From the sequence record OM718002.1: a stretch of DNA of 64,000 nucleotides; one strand, given 5' to 3'. Shown piece after piece: positions 2,246 to 37,880 of the stretch. The notes under the pieces are model-generated. The model was given only the letters and a program-made list of their open reading frames with translations, searched no databases and was not told the DNA's origin. The stretch's first letter is position 1, and each line of letters starts with the position of its first letter. A program made the position numbers and the translations under genes.

Positions 2246-3760
2246 ATGTTTGAGTTATTGTTGTCTTCTGGACTAACAAATACGCCTATATATTCCGATC
2301 CTTATCCAGGTCCTAAAACACTGATAGCTGGGACAAGGGAATTAGGTTTGTATGGTGAAACAACATCTTCAGAATTATTTGGTTATGATGATGCAGCTAA
2401 ATTAGTTAATATGACATTTGGAACAGTAATCAATGATGGACAACCATGGTTAAAGTTCTCTAATAAAAATGTTACTTGTTACATACCAAAGAAACCAGCT
2501 CGTAAATCAATACAAAAATCACGGCTTAATAATGCCGGACTCCGTAATGGTGACTATGAAGTTAGATTTATGGGGAACATTTATAAATTTGGTTTATTAA
2601 CAATGGCTGGTGCCACATCAGAATGGCAAAGGTTACTTTATAATGTTCACGTATCTAATTTAAATGGTGCTAACTGGCCTTATAAATTTACAGATAATGA
2701 CTTAGGTATTAACCAAGCGGTCGCTGGTGGTATTAGCACTGATGGTACTACTAACTGGGGAAGAGACCCAGGTAGTGATCCAGTTAATGACCAGCTCTAT
2801 CGTGGCTACTATGCGATTGATATAACTAGCTCGTCAAGTAGTGAAACGGGTGCTGCAACCCAAGGTTGGCGTCCAGTGGTTTATGCTAGTGGTACATATC
2901 CATTCGTTAAAGATAATGTTATTAAACTTACTGATTTTGAAACTGATAACGAAATGGCAGCAGGTGCCCAAATAGGTAACTTAGTCTATTATTACGGTGG
3001 TAAGAATAATGCTAATACTGCTCTACGTACACTGAATTTAGTCACGGGTAAGTTAACAACATTACAACCAACTGGTACGCCTATAGCAGTTAAACAATGC
3101 TCGGCTGTTGCATTTAATGGTAAAGTATATTTCTATGGTGGTGAAAGTGCCACAGATGGTGTACTTACTAAAGATATGCAGTGTTATGATCCTGCAACTA
3201 ATACATGGGAAATAAAATCACCAGGCACGATAGCTTGCCGGTATGCACGTGGAACTAGTCTTAATGGGTTAATCTACATATTAGGTGCAGCTGATACAAC
3301 TGCGACAAATAATCGTGGATTTACATTAATGTACAATCCAACTACAGATACATATACCAGTGGTGCAGCATTTAATGATACTGGGGAATATACCCAAGAT
3401 TATTCAGTGAGTATTTATAATAATAGCGTATGCGTTATTGGTGGTACGGTTGGTGCTGGTGTTAATACTGGAATCATATCGTACAATCAAACCAACAATA
3501 ATTGGTCCAAACCAATAACTACAGGTATACCTCTTGGTGCAGCTATTAATATACGCCCATCTGGTGAACTTTATGTAATCGCTGGTGAAAATCAAAATAA
3601 CGCACCAATTAAGTATTATGAACCACGATTAGCACGATGGATAAATTTAGGTAATTTAGAAACTGGTTTAGTGGATGCAGGTTTTGCCAATACGTTTAAT
3701 AATGACGGTAAGATTTATGTTCTAAACGGTAATCAGAATTTAAAATACCAAATTAGTTAA
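2246..3760 (+). CDS. Virion structural protein with C-terminal Kelch beta-propeller (gp83-like)
   Basis: N-terminal PGPKTLIAG...LYGE...WLKF...PKKP signature of a phiKZ structural paralog family; about six Kelch-like repeats (YYYGG, YFYGG, IYILG, CVIGG, YVIAG, YVLNG). Confidence 0.75.
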   Translation: MFELLLSSGLTNTPIYSDPYPGPKTLIAGTRELGLYGETTSSELFGYDDAAKLVNMTFGTVINDGQPWLKFSNKNVTCYIPKKPARKSIQKSRLNNAGLRNGDYEVRFMGNIYKFGLLTMAGATSEWQRLLYNVHVSNLNGANWPYKFTDNDLGINQAVAGGISTDGTTNWGRDPGSDPVNDQLYRGYYAIDITSSSSSETGAATQGWRPVVYASGTYPFVKDNVIKLTDFETDNEMAAGAQIGNLVYYYGGKNNANTALRTLNLVTGKLTTLQPTGTPIAVKQCSAVAFNGKVYFYGGESATDGVLTKDMQCYDPATNTWEIKSPGTIACRYARGTSLNGLIYILGAADTTATNNRGFTLMYNPTTDTYTSGAAFNDTGEYTQDYSVSIYNNSVCVIGGTVGAGVNTGIISYNQTNNNWSKPITTGIPLGAAINIRPSGELYVIAGENQNNAPIKYYEPRLARWINLGNLETGLVDAGFANTFNNDGKIYVLNGNQNLKYQIS

Positions 3761-3765
3761 CGAAA

Positions 3766-3795
3766 TAAACCCTCCCGTAATGGGAGGGTTTTATG
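3766..3795. terminator. Bidirectional hairpin terminator between convergent genes
   Basis: AAACCCTCCC-GTAAT-GGGAGGGTTT followed by TATG. Confidence 0.8.
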
Positions 3796-3863
3796 ATGTG
3801 TCGAAGTTTATGTTAGCAGTAATGATCAATTGATAATATTTAATTAGGAATACCTTCCATTTT

Positions 3864-4232
3864 TTAATATCCTTCATTAAGTAGTTCTGCTAGAGCACGT
3901 GCCTGTGAAATATCAGTAGAAGCAAAAACATCAGAAAGATAGTTATCATGTTCTTTTGCATTCTGACGCAATTCATCCATTAGATGTTTATTAGATACCG
4001 CCCATACTTTCCACAGATTTTTATAATCATCATATTTGGGATTATACCCGTCTAGTGGTGGTTTTCCTTTACCAGCTTTCCAATGGTTGGAGTATATGCG
4101 ATATCCTTTACAATCTAACTGCCAAGCTTCCTCAATTGTTCTGCCATCAGGAAGCCTTGCGTAAAGAGCCGAGAATCTTTTGTCACCAACAGATGAACAT
4201 TCATATCCTCCTCGGCGCTTCCACTGATATAT
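3864..4232 (-). CDS. Uncalled 122-aa conserved phage protein with ATA start (or mutated ATG)
   Basis: Open frame (I/M)YQWKRRGGYECSSVGDKRFSALYARLPDGRTIEEAWQLDCKGY...SQARALAELLNEGY; first codon ATA overlaps the upstream TAA (TAATA instead of TAATG). Confidence 0.65.
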   Translation of the reverse strand: MYQWKRRGGYECSSVGDKRFSALYARLPDGRTIEEAWQLDCKGYRIYSNHWKAGKGKPPLDGYNPKYDDYKNLWKVWAVSNKHLMDELRQNAKEHDNYLSDVFASTDISQARALAELLNEGY

Positions 4233-17619: not shown

Positions 17620-18543
17620 TCAATGATCAGGGGCATATTCTAATGCAATACCACTACATTCAAGCAGGTGATCAAACATAGCTACTGGACGAGATCCACC
17701 AAATGGGATCTTTTCACGATCAACTGCAACTGGTACAGATGAAGGTTTTTCTGCTGTTAGCCAAGACTCAATAACCGCAGCATGTGCCAATGGGTTATTA
17801 GTTTGGTCTAAGATTTCAGCAGTCGGACCTGGACCAACTGTACAGTTATATGACCGAGTTTCAGATTCACCGAATGACCGGATAGCTGTTTCTCGACCAG
17901 GAGTGCTAGCCCTATCAGCATTGTTTAACTTAGAAGGTAGACCAAATGGTTGTGTTTTTACAGATGCTGCTGCTGACCAGTCTTCACCAATCTTTTCTAG
18001 TAGCATCATGTAAAGTGGACCCATTAAGACATTATCTTTAGTTGTTACCCACTTACCAGCTTGATCTCGATAAGATACCTTCCCATAGTGTGGTCGATAC
18101 TTATCGCTATTAATTAATTTGTTGACTGCTGCCATTAGATCCACTGGATCATCAACTGGTGCGTAGATATATGGGAATCCATCCATTAGTACTGTTTTAA
18201 CATGTTCTGCTGGATTTGGGTGTTCCATCATTTTACTATGCATTGTTGGAGCAATGATCTCATAGAAACCTAATAGTTCTTTAAATGCATAATCAACCCA
18301 TTGCGTATTACCCATTACACTATTTAGTTGTTGCTGGGTTGGTTTGGCATGTCGATCTAGTCCAGCTTCAACGCGTAGGCGTTGAGCTAGATCTCGTGCA
18401 GCTGCGCCAAAACCATGTTCATAAATTCGACCATAATTTGAACGACGCATGGTTGAACCACCAAAGATAATTAGATCTGCCCTATTACCATTTTCGTCAA
18501 TAGGCATATCTTCATCTTCCATTACCTTACAGATGACGCCCTT
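17620..18543 (-). CDS. Non-virion RNAP beta subunit (gp71-73), exon 2
   Basis: Begins AAG GGC GTC ATC TGT (KGVICKVMEDEDMP...ADL) right after the terminal intron G; splicing restores FHGG-KGVI, equivalent to bacterial RHGNKGVI. Confidence 0.9.
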   Translation of the reverse strand, partial: KGVICKVMEDEDMPIDENGNRADLIIFGGSTMRRSNYGRIYEHGFGAAARDLAQRLRVEAGLDRHAKPTQQQLNSVMGNTQWVDYAFKELLGFYEIIAPTMHSKMMEHPNPAEHVKTVLMDGFPYIYAPVDDPVDLMAAVNKLINSDKYRPHYGKVSYRDQAGKWVTTKDNVLMGPLYMMLLEKIGEDWSAAASVKTQPFGLPSKLNNADRASTPGRETAIRSFGESETRSYNCTVGPGPTAEILDQTNNPLAHAAVIESWLTAEKPSSVPVAVDREKIPFGGSRPVAMFDHLLECSGIALEYAPDH

Positions 18544-18850
18544 CGTTATGTTCAGGTAAGTTCGCTACGCTTACCCCGCCTCTCGTATTGCAGGCAGCTG
18601 CATGTCACCATGCAGACCAGACTATATCTTAACCTTCACCCTAGGTGGTCAGGTCCCTCCCATTTCCACTCGCTTGAGTGTACTCCGCGTAACCGGATAG
18701 TCGTTGAACGTTCAATCCATTTCTGGAAAGCTTCGCTGCTGATTGTCTCATTGAGATGTCCCAGCAATTAGAGAGGATTTACTTGACTCTTTCGAGATCA
18801 AGCAGGCAATTTGACAATATCCATTCCTGAGAGATGGATGGATATTAATT
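18544..18850 (-). ncRNA. Group I self-splicing intron (307 nt, no ORF) in the nvRNAP beta gene
   Basis: P AAUUGCUGGGA, Q AAUCAGCAGC, R GUUCAACGACUA, S AAGAUAUAGUC; 5' exon ends in U and intron ends in G; in-frame splice gives a 700-aa protein. Confidence 0.92.
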
Positions 18851-20029
18851 ACCACCATGAAAATCAGTCATCTTGAAAGCACCAGCAGGCATCTTTTGGG
18901 CTTTGTAAGTTACTTCGACTCGCCATTCATCTAGTGGGTCTAGTCGATAGAATCGAGATAGTTTACGGACATTATCAGGTTGAGGTAGGAACATCTGTGC
19001 AGTTACAATAAGACGTTCAAATTCCTCAGTGATATGTAGATCATCTTTACGACGTGCTAATAGACCACGATAGATCTTTAATAGTTCTCGATAATAACTG
19101 CTAAGATGAGTATGATATTTAACTAGTTGTGCATCCATTCCTGTTGGAGTAGGGGATGGATTTACACGCTCATCACGCCAAATATCAATATCAATAACCT
19201 TCGCACCAGGTGTGCCAATAACAGCTCTATCGAAAGTTCTATCTAGTGTACGAAGTGCCCTAGGAGTCATCTCGGCAGGAGCTAGATCATCATCATGGTC
19301 ACGGATGGCGAAGATTACACCATCTGGTCGGATAACATCGCCAATGTCTGGGAATGGTTTATAGACCTTATCATCGCCATACATGTTTAAGAAGAAAGCT
19401 TTCCTACCAGCATTAGCTACAGCCGTGCTATAACTAGTTGGCATCATCCTTTTAAGGAAATTCTTATTAGCTACGAATCCATCTTCAATGGTACCAGCGG
19501 CAGATAGGAATACAACATTAGCATTAACACCCATCCCTAAAGTACCGTCTTTCTTAACTGCACCAGACTGTGCAATCACTGTGTCTTTAGAGAACATTTC
19601 ATTTGGGGCAATGGTTTCCCACACTTCTCGATTCTTTACAAGTTCATAACCAAAGTCTTGGTGATGACTCATGTACTCGGGAACATGTAAGACACCAATG
19701 GTTTTATATTTGTCAAAATAGTTTTCGTAGATAATAGTTGTTACCGGGTTAGATCTAATACTGTCTTTACCAATACCCGTTGGATATTTTCTAAGAACAT
19801 GTAGTACACGACAATCCTCAGGAAAACGAACATCATGTGTATACTTGGCATACTCTAATTCAGCACCCGTTAGGAAATAACGCGATTCATTTCCATTTAC
19901 TTCTGGTGCCTGGCCAATATGTGTTACAAACATAGCACCCCGTGCAGATGAGGTAGTGCCATACCAAGGATCTAAACCAGTATGCCCTAATAGGGTTAGA
20001 TCAATTTCACGTTTACCTAGTTCAGCCAT
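18851..20029 (-). CDS. Non-virion RNAP beta subunit (gp71-73), exon 1
   Basis: MAELGK... with SSARGAM, NANVVFLS and TIEDG motifs; ends KMTDFHGG. Confidence 0.9.
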
Positions 20030-20141
20030 TTTGTTTATCACCATTAATTAGACAAGATGCAGTACTACTATATTTCTTATTTGCGCTGTTTTTAGATATA
20101 GCCTTTTGTAAGACTTCAATGTCTGGTATCACCAATCTCAT
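20022..20141 (-). CDS. Uncalled 39-aa leader ORF coupled to the nvRNAP beta gene
   Basis: AGGAGG RBS, MRLVIPDIEVLQKAISKNSANKKYSSTASCLINGDKQNG; stop overlaps the beta start (ATGGCTGA). Confidence 0.55.
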   Translation of the reverse strand: MRLVIPDIEVLQKAISKNSANKKYSSTASCLINGDKQNG

Positions 20142-31679: not shown

Positions 31680-32063
31680 TTAATAGATTTGTTTATCAAA
31701 AGAACAATTGATTGGAATAGTGATAACTTCATTAGTAATTACATGTTTACCTGTCTTTTTAAAGAATTGTGCAAATTTTGAAGTAGCTGGAATTACAAGG
31801 GTATCATCCCGATCATTATTTGACATATTGTAAAAAGTAAACTTACCGTCTAGGTTAAACCTAATGCACCACTTAATATTTCGTATTTTGAAATCTATAC
31901 CAAATCTTAAATGACCATCAATCAATTCAGAACCACCGTATTCATAAGCTCCGGTGAAATTCCAATTAATTTCTGATAATTGGAAAGTTACAGGATGTTC
32001 GCCATATTCATCTTGTATGTAGTAACCATCATGAGCTTTCCAATAGATAACTAAATCATGCAT
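31680..32063 (-). CDS. Hypothetical protein
   Basis: 127 aa with GAGG RBS. Confidence 0.6.
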   Translation of the reverse strand: MHDLVIYWKAHDGYYIQDEYGEHPVTFQLSEINWNFTGAYEYGGSELIDGHLRFGIDFKIRNIKWCIRFNLDGKFTFYNMSNNDRDDTLVIPATSKFAQFFKKTGKHVITNEVITIPINCSFDKQIY

Positions 32064-32122
32064 ACTACTAGCCTCAAAGAATTAATAGGGGATTCAAACT
32101 CCCCTATTAATTTATTTTGCTT

Positions 32123-32311
32123 TTAATCATTAAGCTTAGAGATCATTTCGACATATGCATCGACAAACCTTCTGTTTACCACTACATCACCATTCCCGCA
32201 AGTAATATATCTCTTAGTGAATACGGCTACCGATCTGGCTTCACGTTCATCTCATTCGACTTGTGATAAACATTCCGGGTTACGTCGAATAATTTCACGA
32301 ATATTAGACAT
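32123..32311 (-). pseudogene. Small early gene (63 codons) interrupted by an in-frame TGA at 32252-32254
   Basis: AAGGGG RBS, MSNIREIIRRNPECLSQVE*DEREARSVAVFTKRY...SKLND*; has its own early promoter and a downstream hairpin (32083-32110). Confidence 0.6.
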
Positions 32312-32342
32312 TGGGTATTCCCCTTATCACTATTGCATCTTA

Positions 32343-32363
32343 GTGATATAAATCTGAAATTAA
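32343..32363 (-). promoter_or_regulatory. phiKZ early-type promoter motif
   Basis: TTAATTTCAGATTTATATCAC. Confidence 0.65.
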
Positions 32364-32452
32364 ATCCAGTGGAACTTTACATCCATGGTTAGTCGCCGCC
32401 ATAACAGGAAATAAAGCCCCCTACTACATAAATAGTAGGGGTAAGTTTATTA

Positions 32453-32671
32453 TTACGACTTCAACCATTCTTCTAATGGCGGTAAATACTTCTCATGCGC
32501 CCAGTTAATAATTGTTTCTACAACAGGACCCTGTAATTCAAGGTTACCTGAGATTTCATGTGGTTCATCAATAGATAGAACCCATGTATGTGGAGCAATG
32601 CGTTCAGTTGCTTTGGTTAAATACACATCAGGCATTAACGTTAAATTCAATTGATCGCCGTCAAAATCCGC
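32453..32671 (-). CDS. nvRNAP beta' N-terminal subunit (gp55-56.1), exon 3
   Basis: Begins GCG GAT TTT GAC GGC GAT = ADFDGD catalytic motif directly after the terminal intron G. Confidence 0.92.
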   Translation of the reverse strand, partial: ADFDGDQLNLTLMPDVYLTKATERIAPHTWVLSIDEPHEISGNLELQGPVVETIINWAHEKYLPPLEEWLKS

Positions 32672-33166
32672 CGTTATGTTCAGTATGGGTCGTTAATCCA
32701 TACCCGGTAGTATAATTACCACATGATAATTACCACCTGCTGCATGTCGCCATGCAGACCAGACTATATCTTCACCCTTCCTTTCGGAGTAGGGTGTCTC
32801 CCATTTCGAGTCACTTGACTCTACATCCTATTTCTAGGACCGGCGCACCTGATACCGTAATAGTCGTTGAACCTTCTCCTATTCCTAAATGGAATGTTAC
32901 GGAGCTTGGCTGCTGATTGTCCCTACCTAATCTTTTTCAAACCTTGGCTTTGTCTTTCGACTCGCAGTGGTAGATTAGTTTAACAGGATATCCCAGCAAT
33001 TAGAGAGAACTCATCCCAATGATTACTCATTGGGGGAACTAGACTTGATTAACTTAATAAGGTATTTATCAAGCGCTCCATTCTTTTTTAAATGAAGTCG
33101 GATCAAAGACGGACACTACTCCGTTTTGTTCCATTGTTTTTACCTTATTTGGTTATTTACTTGTCC
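32672..33166 (-). ncRNA. Group I intron (495 nt, no intact ORF) inserted in the NADFDGD motif
   Basis: P AAUUGCUGGGA, Q AAUCAGCAGC, R GUUCAACGACUA, S AAGAUAUAGUC; exon ends AAU and intron ends CUGAACAUAACG. Confidence 0.9.
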
Positions 33167-33274
33167 ATTAGGCGCTTTAAGGCATAATACTGACATGCTG
33201 ATTGAATTATCATTAATGTCATCTTTTACTTTAGTAATAAAGAATTGCTGAGTAGATCCACGTTGAAGAGTCGG
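33167..33274 (-). CDS. nvRNAP beta' N-terminal subunit, exon 2 (108-nt micro-exon)
   Basis: PTLQRGSTQQFFITKVKDDINDNSISMSVLCLKAPN; splicing gives HRN-PTL (bacterial NRAPTLH) and PN-ADFDGD. Confidence 0.9.
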
Positions 33275-34468
33275 CGTTGTGTTCAGATAAGTTCGTTAAG
33301 CTTATCCCGTCTATTAATAATAGACAGCTGCATGTCGCCATGCAGACCAGACTATATCTTCACCTTTGGCATTACCCAGTAAGGTGCTCCCTATTTCGAG
33401 TCACTTGACTCTACTCTACTCGGTTCACTTTCGTGCCTTTCGATAGTCGTTGAACGTTCCTATTATTTCTAATAGGCTTCGCTGCTGATTGTCTCAGTGA
33501 GATGTTCCAGCAATTAAAGGAGTTTTGTCGAGTAATATTTCTATTACAAGGAAACCATTGGTTAGGGTCACTTACGGCTCTTGGTGGCGCACCGTAGTGT
33601 TTTAAGCATTTGATAACGATTGTATTTCTCAATAGATTCATCTATCTCAGATTGGGTGAGTTTAGAAACGTATTCGAATAACCGTTCCTTATCCTCGACC
33701 TTACAGACAACTACTCCATTAAAAACTCGAAGATCGCGTTTCTTCAGGATATCTTGAATAGTACCTTTAATCAATCCTGTTTTTAATTGGAGATCAGTAA
33801 GGTTTACTGCTCGATAGAATGTACCTGTTTTAAAATCAATGCAATAAACTTCAATTGCATTCTTTCTTTGTTGCGGGTGGTATTCACCCGTTACCTCAAA
33901 AATATAACGTCCGTTATATGGTTTTTCAGTGTGTGCAAGAACTACATGTAAACCTTTCTTATGTTTCAGTTCAAGGAATTCTGCAACTTCTTTCATTGAG
34001 ATGAAGTTCCATACTTCCTTAGTTATTACATCTGTACATTTTACAGAAAGGGCATGTTTATTCGCACCTGTTATAAAAGCATGTTTGACATTACCACTAT
34101 GTGTTATCCATTCCAGATTACGATAATAGTTATTATGCTTATTCGTATCTTTATGGTTTACATCCCAATCATCAGGATTATCTGGCAATCCATTAAATGC
34201 CATACATACAAATCTATGTGGATATCTTATCTTTCTCTCGCCTTTATCGTTAATGATGTTAACAGTCAAGTATGTACCTTTAGATGATTTATTCTCATGT
34301 TGTGAGATAATATCATGGTTTAAGTTACGTACTATACCGAACTGGTTAATTTCATAACGACTAAAACCAGGTATTTTTCGCCAGTCTAATTCTTCATCCA
34401 TATTTCCTCACTGTTAGTGACATCAGGCGCCACACCCTAGTCAAATGCTTTTTTTCCTAACTAAATTA
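33275..34468 (-). mobile_element. Group I intron (1194 nt) carrying an HNH homing endonuclease in its P1 loop
   Basis: Full P/Q/R/S core at about 33320-33520; guide GUUUC pairs with exon end GAAAU; intron ends CUGAACACAACG. Confidence 0.92.
33568..34401 (-). CDS. Intron-encoded HNH homing endonuclease (NUMOD4-HNH, I-HmuI-like)
   Basis: WRKIPGFSRYEINQFG (NUMOD4), HRFV...VNHKDTNKHNN...NLEW (HNH), two C-terminal helix-turn-helix-like repeats. Confidence 0.92.
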   Translation of the reverse strand: MDEELDWRKIPGFSRYEINQFGIVRNLNHDIISQHENKSSKGTYLTVNIINDKGERKIRYPHRFVCMAFNGLPDNPDDWDVNHKDTNKHNNYYRNLEWITHSGNVKHAFITGANKHALSVKCTDVITKEVWNFISMKEVAEFLELKHKKGLHVVLAHTEKPYNGRYIFEVTGEYHPQQRKNAIEVYCIDFKTGTFYRAVNLTDLQLKTGLIKGTIQDILKKRDLRVFNGVVVCKVEDKERLFEYVSKLTQSEIDESIEKYNRYQMLKTLRCATKSRK

Positions 34469-35605
34469 ATTTCGGTGAAAAGTACAACCCATCCCTTTAT
34501 AAGGGGCTGCTTCTGCAATTAGCTCTTTAAATAGATCTGCAATGATTTGGTTATATTGAAGTACATTCTCATATACAAATGAGAATGCTTCACGAGTTGT
34601 CATGTTAAACTTTGCTTTTAGTTTATTGGTTAGATGATACTTTAATAATTGACAACCTACTCCCCACGGAATATGTAATTCATCATAATCATGCGGATCA
34701 CTAATAGAAGTGATTACTGCACGTGCCGTAGCGTTGAGACGAGCACCAAACATGTGACGCCGAGCAAGACCAGGCTTTTGAGCAATTCGTGATTTTGCGT
34801 AGATCTCGTAGAACTGGCCATATAGTCTTAGTCCTCGCATAGTCCTATTCTGAGCTTTAATTGGACTAAGTGGTACAGATGATGCATCAATACTAGCGAA
34901 GGTTAAGGTAGCATCAATTGCTGCTTCAATTGGTTTATCTAAGTAAGTACCAGATGTGGTTGATTCTGCTACGAAACAGAGTTTAGAAGGAACTGGTAAA
35001 TATTTAGGGAATAACTTATCTTTATTCTGAGCAACGAATTGAGCGAATTCGGATTTATTATTAGAAATAATATTTGCATCTAGTAGGAATTGGAAGATCT
35101 CATTGAAATTATCAATGAAGTGATTTAATCCTCTTTCAAATCCTCGATGCAGTAGCCTATCTACTTTTCTGCGTGTTTCTTTAGAACCAATAGATTCCAC
35201 ATCGTATCGATAAGAAGTATCAGTTAGATATGCTAAGAAATCGAATTCTTTAGTTACTAGATATCCGGTTAGCATAATGATTAAACGTGGGTTAATTAGA
35301 CTACGTACATGTTTTGGTGTACGAACCCACATTGATGGTTCGATAGGGCGGCTAGAAGTATTGACAACTGGAGTATTACAAATATCACAGATTACTCCGA
35401 GTTTATGTGCGTCTTCGATTGCTCGACAATCACAACTTACGCTACTTTCAATTGCTTCTGAATCTTGGAAATGAGAATAGAAATGCCTATCAAATTCTTC
35501 TTTCTCATCTGAGTTACTCGTATTGTAATCATTGGCATAAATACGTTTACCCGTAAATTGATCATGTACTTCATCATGATCAACAACTTTGGCATAAAGA
35601 CCCAT
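34469..35605 (-). CDS. nvRNAP beta' N-terminal subunit (gp55), exon 1
   Basis: CDC...CDIC Zn finger, KPGLARRHMFGARL, RAVI; ends FHRN; spliced product is 487 aa. Confidence 0.9.
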
Positions 35606-35630
35606 ACCAAACTCCTATTTATCGATTAAC

Positions 35631-35673
35631 AAAAAAAGGAGATATAAGCGGCCCCCGAAGGAGCCGCTATATC
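35631..35673 (-). terminator. Strong intrinsic terminator after the chmA 3' element
   Basis: GATATAGCGGCTCC-TTCG-GGGGCCGCTTATATC followed by TCCTTTTTTT. Confidence 0.9.
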
Positions 35674-35998
35674 AGTTTTTACAATGGACCACCAACGGAG
35701 CCTGGCCCGAGCCTAGCGTCATCTACAAAGCTTAACCTCCGCTCTTCTTTGTAGCATACCGGCACTAGTCTCATTTACCATCCATTGTAGTTTTTGATCA
35801 CACGTTACCTTTTGAGTAACTCCTTTCGGTTAAGTGATCTATCATCCTCGTGTAGTGATAGGTCGACCTAGACTAAGTCCACTAGTCGATTACTTCACGG
35901 AACCTACTCCTAACCGTTATCACCGAAGTGAACCAGGGTCGCAGTATTAGAATCGGGATGTTACTTATTTAACATCCCTATCTACCGAGGTATTTCCT
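35674..35998 (-). ncRNA. Candidate structured RNA in the chmA 3' region
   Basis: At least seven helices and two putative pseudoknots found by inspection; no ORF or RBS; GC-richer than the flanking intergenic DNA. Confidence 0.65.
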
Positions 35999-35999
35999 A

Positions 36000-37880
36000 T
36001 TAGTACCAGGTACCCGGTGCATTATAGGAAGGAGCGCCGTAAGTTTGACCCATGCTGCCAGCCATGCCAACTTGTGCACTACCAGAAACAGCCATGTTAC
36101 CCATACCGGTGTAACCAGCGAAGCGCTGTTGACCGAAGTTGGTAATTAGGTTTTCCATGGTTACAGTTACACCAGCTGCTGCTGCTGCGGCATCCATTGC
36201 GGTGATGAATTTCGGGTTAAAGGTTAGACGACGAGCACGACCAGTATAGGTAACGTTACCTAGGTACATCTTGTCGAAGCCTTTACTGTTATTCATACGA
36301 CGCACAATGTGGTCATTACCTACTTGAGTAGCATACCAGGTCTTCCACTCTTGATCGTTACCTTCAGACATGTTCATGGCACCTAGAACGTCAAGATCAC
36401 GACGGTCACTTAGTTCGCCATGCTCATCAGTGTAGTGACCGAGGTCTACTTCATGATGGTTGTCAAAGATGATCGGACCAGCTTCAGCTAGGTTATAGAA
36501 CTGACGGAAATCAGTGCCATATAGGTTAGTTAGAGCTTGGAAGATCAGGCTAACTGCACGAGCTTGGTTTACGCCACCAGCTGCATCTAGGACTACTTGC
36601 TCAAGAGCAGAGTTGTCACCCATCGGATCGATATCGATCTGGAATGCAGGGTTCTGGTTAACCATCTTGTTCATTAGCATTACGAAGTTGCTGTCGTCTG
36701 CCATGAATGCTTCGGTGCGAGTTTCAATCGCTTTACCTAGCTCTGAGTAATAACCAAGTGCACCAATATCACGCATCTTGCTGGTAGCGATCTTCGGCAT
36801 TAGGGTACGAGCCCATGCCTGGGATGCAGTTGCACGATACGCATTACCAAGTGCGAACAGCCACATTTCTAGAGTCCATGCTTGGATCCAGGAAGCCTTA
36901 CGAACGTCAGTGATAACGATGTAAGGAGTGAACTGCGGAGGTAGAACTGCACCAGGTAGAGTTACGCCGAACATACCTTGTTGCTGGCCAGTGGTCGGAG
37001 TCCAATGTAGGTCTACGAATAGACTAACTTGGTTTAGCTGGCTATCGGTATCATAGAACTCGTTCTCAGGTACGTTGGTTTTCTTACCACGGCTAGTGGA
37101 GATAACCAGGTCAGAACGAATCGGATTACCGCAGCTATCTTTAACCGGAATACCATTGTAGTCTAGGTTGCAGGTAAGCTGTTCGTTTTCTGCTTTGATG
37201 TGGGTCGCAATAGAGAACGGAGTCTCATTGTTACGACGTGCGATAGCATCTTCACAGATATTAACAGATTCAACTAGTAGGTTCTTAACAGCTAGTTCAT
37301 CTTTGAAGTCGAAGTCAGCATACACTGCACGGGGACCGGCAGATAGTACTTCTAGACCAGGGATGTTGTAACGGTTCCGTAGGAATTCGCCGATCTTGCT
37401 CCAGTATTGAGCAGTGAATACATCACGCGGTAGTACCTTCTCTTCAATGATGTCATCAGTTAGACCATTGTTGATCTTGTGGGTACGGGGACGGATGCGA
37501 GTACCAGGTAGGTTATCGAGTACTAGAGTACGAACGAATGCCTTCATGGAACCATTGATATCTTTAGCTAGTTTAACAATTAGTAGACCAGCCATACCAA
37601 CTTGTTGCGCATCGCGATCGAAACGATGGATATCGAAATCATCAGGTAGGTCCTGATGGCGGATTGCTTCTTCTTTTACTTTAGTGAATACTTGTAGGGC
37701 ATCTGCTGAACGAGCATCAGAACCATCTAGCCGCCCAGAGCGACGCATTAGATGGTTAATGCCAGTAGTTGACCCAGGTGCGCCAGCAGGACGTTGAGCT
37801 TGACGCTGTGCAGTGGGTTGCGGAGCCGGAGTGGTAGCTTGAGTTTGAACGGTGCCGATTTCGTTTTCGTTAACAGCCAT
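36000..37880 (-). CDS. chmA: Phage nuclear shell protein chimallin (gp54)
   Basis: 626 aa with a disordered Q/A/P N-terminus, optimised codons and a C-terminal FGQQRFAG motif; located between the DNA polymerase and gp55. Confidence 0.92.

Follow-up and report, generated by a model that had tools for sequence, protein, structure and literature searches.

How does Pseudomonas phage Churi (OM718002.1, Phikzvirus) make the catalytic subunit of its non-virion RNA polymerase (nvRNAP), when the gene is annotated as fragments? The protein is the homolog of phiKZ gp55, the N-terminal beta' subunit, which bears the catalytic NADFDGD loop. In a window of 64,000 nucleotides (nt) of this record, the minus strand was found to carry the gp55 homolog as three exons separated by two group I introns, 108 nt apart, at FHRN/PTLQ and KAPN/ADFDGD. 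We consider it very probable that the gene is split by two paralogous, selfish group I introns predicted to be self-splicing; splicing, endonuclease activity and homing are what we infer from their sequence. Megablast of positions 32300-35750 returned Churi at 100% identity over the full length and vB_PA32_GUMS at 98.2% identity. About 48 further Pseudomonas phiKZ-like records matched in 1-4 pieces that covered 60-98%, a first sign of structural polymorphism among the relatives. The features of the locus are as follows (ORF, open reading frame; aa, amino acids).

34469-35605, minus strand: exon 1, 379 codons, ending FHRN, last base T (U at the 5' splice site); GenBank Churi_gp284, 'hypothetical protein'.
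33275-34468, minus strand: intron 1 (site S1, N379/P380), 1194 nt, group I, starting with TAA and ending in G.
33568-34401, minus strand: intact HNH homing-endonuclease gene Churi_gp283, 277 aa, in the P1 loop of intron 1.
33328-33573, minus strand: ribozyme core of intron 1 (P2-P9), RF00028 89.6 bits.
33167-33274, minus strand: exon 2, 108 nt, 36 codons (P380-N415), PTLQRG...KAPN, last base T; unannotated in GenBank.
32672-33166, minus strand: intron 2 (site S2, N415/A416), 495 nt, group I, ORF-less, ending in G.
33069-33134, minus strand: remnant of a gp56-type HNH gene in intron 2, a 21-codon ORF matching the gp56 N-terminus.
32740-33060, minus strand: ribozyme core of intron 2, RF00028 85.3 bits over the whole model (1-253).
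32453-32671, minus strand: exon 3, 72 codons and a TAA stop, starting ADFDGDQLNL (Mg-binding aspartates); GenBank covers 32453-32635 only, as Churi_gp282.
32418-32441, minus strand: terminator-like hairpin just 3' of the gene.

Exon 1 (35605-34469) ended in TTT CAC CGA AAT and ran directly into the TAA of intron 1, so that translation of unspliced RNA would stop at once. The 3' end of intron 1 was CTGAACACAACG, at 33275, and exon 2 (33274-33167) read from CCG ACT CTT to CCT AAT. Intron 2 ended in CTGAACATAACG, at 32672, and exon 3 started with GCG GAT TTT GAC GGC GAT (ADFDGD), with its stop codon at 32453. Both junctions were in phase 0, with a U before each intron and a terminal G (33275, 32672) closing it. 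The boundaries of intron 2 can be moved by 1 nt because of a shared G; the U/G rule selected the version given in the original prediction, which had proposed this three-exon, two-intron layout with exact phase 0 junctions. Matching the exons to known polymerases bore out that layout in all its coordinates. PHROG 2987 ('RNA polymerase beta subunit', 478 positions) was matched at 1-380, 381-416 and 417-477, and PDB 7OGP_A (PHIKZ055/PHIKZ056.1) at residues 21-399, 400-435 and 436-506, with neither a gap nor an overlap. Identity to 7OGP_A reached 36/36 residues for exon 2 and 71/71 for exon 3. Pfam and NCBIfam searches with the separate exon pieces gave nothing useful, and only PHROGs and PDB were informative.

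Natural alleles that lack an intron provided a second view of the junctions. Alleles empty at S1 (phiKZ, T2P, pPA-N1803, Wadjak1, 30-1 and PA02) read through FHRNPTLQ, and those empty at S2 (OMKO1, fnug, Brmt and PA7) read through KAPNADFDGD; by this comparison the two predicted junctions are confirmed. In-silico removal of the introns gave an ORF of 487/488 aa in 17/17 first-round loci. Collectively, the predicted exon/intron boundaries of gp55 are confirmed to the base.

The joined Churi product has 379 + 36 + 72 = 487 aa (55.6 kDa), as had been predicted, and its junctions would be spanned by the tryptic peptides NPTLQR and APNADFDGDQLNLTLMPDVYLTK. The strands of the double-psi beta-barrel that lie between the PTL motif and NADFDGD are encoded by exon 2. 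In the phiKZ gp55 structure, DFDGD is found at 417-421, between strands beta5 and beta6 of this barrel (PMC8287921), in agreement with 379 + 36 + A416 in Churi. NADFDGD arises only once exons 2 and 3 are joined. Exon 2 lacks a start codon and, as the original prediction had noted, is missing from the ORF list; ADFDGD in exon 3 lies upstream of any start codon. Unspliced or half-spliced RNA is predicted to yield truncated proteins of 379 or 423 aa, both without the Mg-binding aspartates.

The group I assignment of both introns held: each matched the 253-position model RF00028 over 1-253 with a score well above the Rfam gathering score of 50 (intron 1, 89.6 bits, E 1.4e-21, 33328-33573; intron 2, 85.3 bits, E 2.8e-20, 32740-33060). 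In intron 1, P1 is formed by the exon end GAAAU and the intron bases UA, which pair with the guide UGGUUUC (33551-33557) about 910 nt downstream, the splice-site U34469 facing G33555 as a U.G wobble. The distal stem UUAG/CUAA closes the ORF-holding P1 loop; it has another sequence and is still paired in the 305-nt ORF-less forms (PA_ZH1, LC) and the SL2-type forms, the P1-stem changes being compensatory across the three site-1 intron forms. The two introns are paralogous: they are 89% identical over P7-P9, their 3' ends are near-identical (CUGAACA(C/U)AACG), and the endonucleases of the two intron types are 35% identical. A P7.1/P7.2-like insert in the Rfam alignment suggests that both are of IA type.

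The HNH gene predicted in intron 1 was recognised by Pfam HNH_3 (33.4 bits; cutoff, 24.8) and by PHROG 59 (HNH endonuclease, E 1.6e-35). Churi gp283 also aligned with I-HmuI (1U3E, E 1.5e-5) from residue 1 through the HNH motif, with the H-N-H residues kept. It is 73% identical to the SL2-type site-1 HNH and 35% identical to phiKZ gp56. Intron 1 is thus a putative mobile element, its HNH homing-endonuclease gene intact and I-HmuI-like; activity and homing are predictions from these matches. Intron 2 lies at the other end of the range. Its positions 1-89 are 92% identical to positions 1-90 of the phiKZ gp56 intron, and its positions 80-411 are 97% identical to 974-1305; the 334-aa HNH gene of phiKZ is cut down in Churi to the 21-codon ORF, after which the gp56 C-terminal codons follow out of frame. 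Intron 2 is the phiKZ gp56 intron, with its endonuclease gene lost by internal deletion. In ORF-less site-2 introns of other loci (L011 (GUMS), 3215-3328; L003, 3224-3337; L004, 2922-3035), 114-nt ORFs bear the GenBank label 'HNH homing endonuclease'; judged by position alone, which is that of the Churi remnant 33069-33134, these are probably remnants as well.

Are these introns spliced out? An intron at phiKZ gp55/gp56 (HNH)/gp56.1 was reportedly predicted by Mesyanzhinov in 2002. The phiKZ genes gp56, gp72 and gp179 have long been predicted to be intron-borne HNH genes (PMC10914365), and the joined gp55/56.1 protein was used in all phiKZ nvRNAP structures (PMC8287921; PDB 7OGP). The single PHIKZ055/PHIKZ056.1 chain of 7OGP agrees with the earlier statement that gp55-gp56.1 splicing is known in phiKZ. 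Native phiKZ gp55 runs at 56 kDa (PMC4666361), which fits the mass computed for the spliced protein (55.7 kDa) and not that of the unspliced one (47.9 kDa). Knockdown of PHIKZ056.1 by an antisense oligonucleotide strongly affected the phage's transcription, an effect listed beside that of gp55 knockdown. Since Churi is viable and DFDGD is indispensable, splicing must occur, and it is in this way that we infer it for Churi itself.

Some points weigh against this reading. No clear or convincing candidate for P10 was found for intron 1 or intron 2. The P1 of intron 2 was drawn by hand and is weak: AAU/GGAC pairs with GUCU(A)GUU through 3 exon and 4 intron pairs with a bulged A. For the same intron, RNAduplex favours a pairing of the exon with the end of the ORF that leaves the splice site unpaired; the pairings compete, and the last exon base is a U. 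Finally, ONT-cappable-seq of phiKZ gave no spliced reads at gp56, gp72 and gp179 under the conditions used (PMC10914365), and these long-read data conflict with the protein data implying splicing. Together with the separate ORFs that are all GenBank offers, this transcriptome study is what speaks for an absence of splicing, in which case the locus would hold separate small ORFs or a decayed gene with exon 2 as a relic. Such a reading leaves ADFDGD ahead of every start codon in exon 3, and has to accommodate a startless exon 2 in which the 16 nt variable across 17 phages are all synonymous. We rejected the split-gene or pseudogene reading on this synonymous-only variation, the full-length cores of both ribozymes, the 56-kDa native gp55 (PMC4666361) and the joined sequence used for cryo-electron microscopy of the active enzyme (PMC8287921; 7OGP), and regard it as having almost no chance of being right.

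Western blots of phiKZ Gp55 showed two bands (PMC10612078, Fig. 1 legend). One might speculate that they reflect spliced and truncated forms. The two bands and the absent spliced reads both bear on the in vivo splicing efficiency of the phiKZ introns.

To place the Churi gene among its relatives, 21 loci were compared, with exons placed by blastn and ribozymes by Rfam. Three insertion sites were found within 42 codons: S1 (N379/P380), S2 (N415/A416) and S3 (D421/Q422). They were occupied in the following combinations.

S1 (1194 nt, HNH277) and S2 ORF-less: Churi, GUMS.
S1 (1244-1250 nt, HNH273, 73% identical) and S2 with gp56-type HNH: KTN4, fMGyn-Pae01.
S1 (HNH273) and S2 with a truncated HNH ORF (224 aa, annotated 'HNH homing endonuclease'): ANB1.
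S1 (HNH273) and S2 ORF-less: SL2.
S1 and S2 both ORF-less: PA_ZH1, KEN19.
S1 ORF-less and S2 with HNH: LC.
S1 and S3, S2 empty: OMKO1, fnug.
S3 only: Brmt, PA7 (JX233784).
S2 only: phiKZ, PA02, pPA-N1803, T2P, Wadjak1, 30-1.
S1, S2 and S3 all occupied: KEN49.

The double intron, which had been thought possibly strain-specific, is not: the Churi configuration recurs in GUMS, and S1 is filled in 18/47 Phikzvirus records (17 phages), for example KTN4, SL2, OMKO1, fnug and PA_ZH1. The proposed alignment with phiKZ and its relatives showed that the phiKZ reference lacks intron 1 and carries an intron at S2 only. A census of ribozyme cores found the Churi-type S1 intron in 10 records, the SL2-type in 7 phages, and the S3 intron in 6 Phikzvirus and 2 Pawinskivirus phages. 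The site-1 intron occurs in ORF-containing and ORF-less forms, its HNH gene being gone in the PA_ZH1 class, LC, KEN49 and KEN19. An IMG/VR scan with exon 1 gave a single locus, so the census rests on GenBank phages. In other jumbo-phage genera the gp55 region was contiguous: in tblastn with the S1/S2-free ORF of Brmt, 288/305 records matched 80% or more of the query at one place. All rows sampled from other genera were single pieces, and the S1-occupied Phikzvirus rows were split or truncated at the site.

The same distribution bears on a regulatory role. It had been argued that the Mg-binding aspartates need both splices and that this creates a splicing checkpoint; the first part follows logically, and the second found no support, as there was no sign of regulated splicing and relatives lack either intron. 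In its full form, this explanation has the two splices timing or gating middle and late transcription, and exon-2 skipping giving functional alternative products. The near-identical 3' ends of the introns make cross-use of splice sites conceivable, and exon skipping by phage group I introns figures in the title of Landthaler and Shub (1999). The logical need of an active nvRNAP for both splices, and the two Gp55 bands of phiKZ (PMC10612078), would also fit. However, phages closely related to Churi manage without intron 1 (as phiKZ does) or lack intron 2 (OMKO1, fnug, Brmt), the sequence showed no feature of regulation, and skipping of exon 2 would take 36 residues out of the catalytic double-psi beta-barrel. 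As all intron combinations occur on near-identical backgrounds, the introns are dispensable and not a conserved regulatory device, and we hold a checkpoint or functional skipping to be very unlikely.

Sequence variation around the sites was consistent with mobile elements in a gene under strong constraint at the protein level. Residues 372-430 were identical in all 17 loci, where every nucleotide difference was synonymous, and no amino-acid change was found outside codons 1-343 among the 17 phages. Variable positions made up 5.1% of codons 1-343, 9.3% of the last 36 codons of exon 1, 14.8% of exon 2, 22% of ADFDGD and about 14% of exon 3, a threefold or larger increase in synonymous variability toward the intron sites. 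A rise of variability toward the intron sites would be expected from repeated homing with co-conversion, or from selection on the endonuclease targets. The Asn codon before the site was AAT whenever the site was occupied and sometimes AAC in empty alleles (T2P at S1; OMKO1 and fnug at S2). Among genes otherwise near-identical, the site-1 element showed presence/absence polymorphism, confined to one precise position. The clearest case was a group of four phages, ANB1, GUMS, pPA-N1803 and PA02, in which the first 1029 nt of the gp55 gene (codons 1-343) were identical and site 1 held type b with a homing endonuclease gene, type a with such a gene, or nothing. Identical sequence combined with three differing site-1 states indicates recent mobility. 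The maximum-likelihood tree of exon-1 codons 1-343 was unresolved, with none of its branches supported, and mobility is judged from the identical-sequence group only.

We return to the reading of two selfish introns. In Churi, the pre-mRNA would have to lose both introns (1194 + 495 nt) to give the 487-aa, 55.6-kDa subunit. Both introns would be selfish elements that target an essential gene at its best-conserved codons. Intron 1 would still be mobile through its intact HNH gene, and the ORF-less intron 2 would keep occupying, and thus protect, the gp56-type homing site, the two introns standing at different stages of a cycle of gain, degeneration and loss.

Compatible with this explanation is a competitive role, in which the introns would confer a relative fitness benefit, as for PhiPA3 gp210 against phiKZ: gp283 would cut or nick site 1 where it is empty in relatives that co-infect, for example phiKZ, converting them or crippling their nvRNAP gene, and intron 2 would shield Churi against gp56-type endonucleases. 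The same phage group offers a precedent (PMC11620839), the HNH gene of Churi is intact, and many co-circulating phages have no intron at site 1; intron sets that vary on identical exon backgrounds, and the raised synonymous diversity at the target sites, point the same way. Nevertheless, the high homology within the genus makes ordinary homing by gene-conversion repair likelier than killing, and the HNH gene is by now gone from many introns at site 1 (PA_ZH1 class, LC, KEN49, KEN19). A role of the Churi introns in phage-phage interference is plausible on this analysis, and weapon and immunity together make a tentative proposal. Slightly less likely still, in our estimate, is the stronger version, in which the three-site cluster (N379/P380, N415/A416, D421/Q422), with its live and dead endonucleases, would decide productive co-infection among Phikzvirus strains and so be an interference system and not mere selfish DNA. 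If it were true, the live site-1 HNH of Churi would attack phiKZ-type genomes, the dead intron at site 2 would make Churi immune to gp56, and therapeutic phiKZ-like phages would show strain incompatibility.

The third site was seen in OMKO1 (L009, 3257-4780), fnug, Brmt, PA7 and the Pawinskivirus phage PS119XW (L019, 3501-3862), where an intron separates ADFDGD from QLN. Its P1 is of textbook form (GGAGAU with GGUCUCC, U.G wobble), and it holds an HNH-like ORF of 256-366 aa (386 aa annotated in Brmt) or none. In Pawinskivirus the S3 intron sits at the same site and is 93% identical, against only 66-76% for the exons, a contrast suggesting that it passed between genera. The KEN49 gene (vB_Pae3705-KEN49, L016) has 3 introns and 4 exons; an 18-nt micro-exon at 3715-3732 encodes exactly ADFDGD and sits between two full ribozymes (Rfam 3343-3664, 3712-4015). 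This four-exon gene is known from a single record, and an assembly artefact is possible.

Another group I intron was found elsewhere in the Churi window.

18544-18847, minus strand: third Churi group I intron, 304 nt, ORF-less, RF00028 84.2 bits.

It splits the nvRNAP beta gene (homolog of phiKZ gp71/73) at FHGGN/KGVICKV, with exons at 18848-20044 and 17620-18543. The upstream exon ends in AAU, the intron starts with UAA, and its 3' end, CUGAACAUAACG, is the same as in intron 2 of gp55. At this place phiKZ bears the HNH gene gp72; the Churi intron has no such gene. In GenBank the gene is listed as two separate ORFs, and the downstream exon is short of its first 7 codons. The three Churi introns each come after the Asn codon AAU and have P7-P9 and 3'-terminal sequences that are almost identical; these shared features would fit one family spreading to RNA polymerase (RNAP) sites through a short AAU-containing guide match, by reverse splicing or ectopic homing.

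Around the gp55 locus, the gene for chimallin, the nuclear shell protein, lies upstream on the same strand (36000-37880), in a position that equals that of phiKZ gp54. On the other side, about 390 nt between exon 3 and the gp57 homolog (32063-32452) hold no annotated gene in Churi; T2P, GUMS and Wadjak1 have an annotated 189-nt ORF downstream of exon 3, and phiKZ reaches gp57 after 49 nt. This stretch is a putative small rearrangement hotspot directly downstream of the intron cluster. A scan of the locus for sigma-70 promoters found fewer sites than in shuffled sequence, a result that is irrelevant because such phages use their own polymerases.

For annotation, these results mean that the catalytic nvRNAP subunit stands as fragments in Churi and in dozens of deposited Phikzvirus genomes, and that exon 2 has never been annotated. 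The Churi paper described gp283 as the 35%-identical counterpart of phiKZ gp56 and gp72 as absent, and left the second intron site unrecognised; the site-1 HNH was thus mistaken for a diverged gp56 ortholog, although it belongs to another intron at another site. Empty, live-intron and endonuclease-less states in every combination make a natural series suited to testing homing, co-conversion and interference, in nucleus-forming phages with transcription and translation physically separated. OMKO1, phiKZ, KTN4 and other phiKZ-like phages are in therapeutic use or have been proposed for it, and mixing strains with unlike intron sets could bring gene conversion or mutual interference. No prior description of the S1 or S3 intron was found in the literature covered; subscription-journal papers (e.g. 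Ceyssens 2014, Hertveldt 2005) lay outside its scope, so an earlier mention is possible.

Among the closest known systems is phiKZ gp55/gp56/gp56.1, whose intron is the same as Churi intron 2, at the same site N415/A416 and 92-97% identical outside the ORF, with exons 94-98% identical. Churi differs in lacking the 334-aa HNH gene, of which the 21-codon remnant is left, and in having an extra intron 108 nt upstream. Clusters of introns within one phage gene are known too: Twort orf142 is reportedly a single gene with three group I introns and exon skipping (Landthaler and Shub, 1999). Like Churi gp55, Twort orf142, Twort nrdE and multi-intron genes of Bastillevirinae (PMC11878797) contain several related group I introns near one another, some with an HNH ORF and some without, but the host gene in Churi is the catalytic subunit of an RNA polymerase. 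A gene for a multisubunit RNAP of a jumbo phage is also host to the gp210 intron of PhiPA3, which lies in the beta gene of the virion RNAP (Birkholz et al. 2024, PMC11620839); it too is a group I intron with an HNH endonuclease, is inserted where catalytic residues are encoded, and is absent from related phages. There, however, the polymerase is the virion one, subunit and site are others, and the competitive effect was shown by experiment, whereas Churi gp283 is known from sequence. The endonuclease itself resembles I-HmuI, the HNH nicking enzyme of the SPO1 DNA polymerase intron (1U3E), in being intron-encoded and in aligning from residue 1 through HNH; gp283 is longer (277 aa vs 174 aa), and the similarity is low outside the N-terminal 110 residues. 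Set beside these systems, with multi-intron phage genes and jumbo-phage RNAP introns already known, the Churi case is one of fairly ordinary selfish phage introns, real but unannotated, of which the site-1 intron appears not to have been described before.

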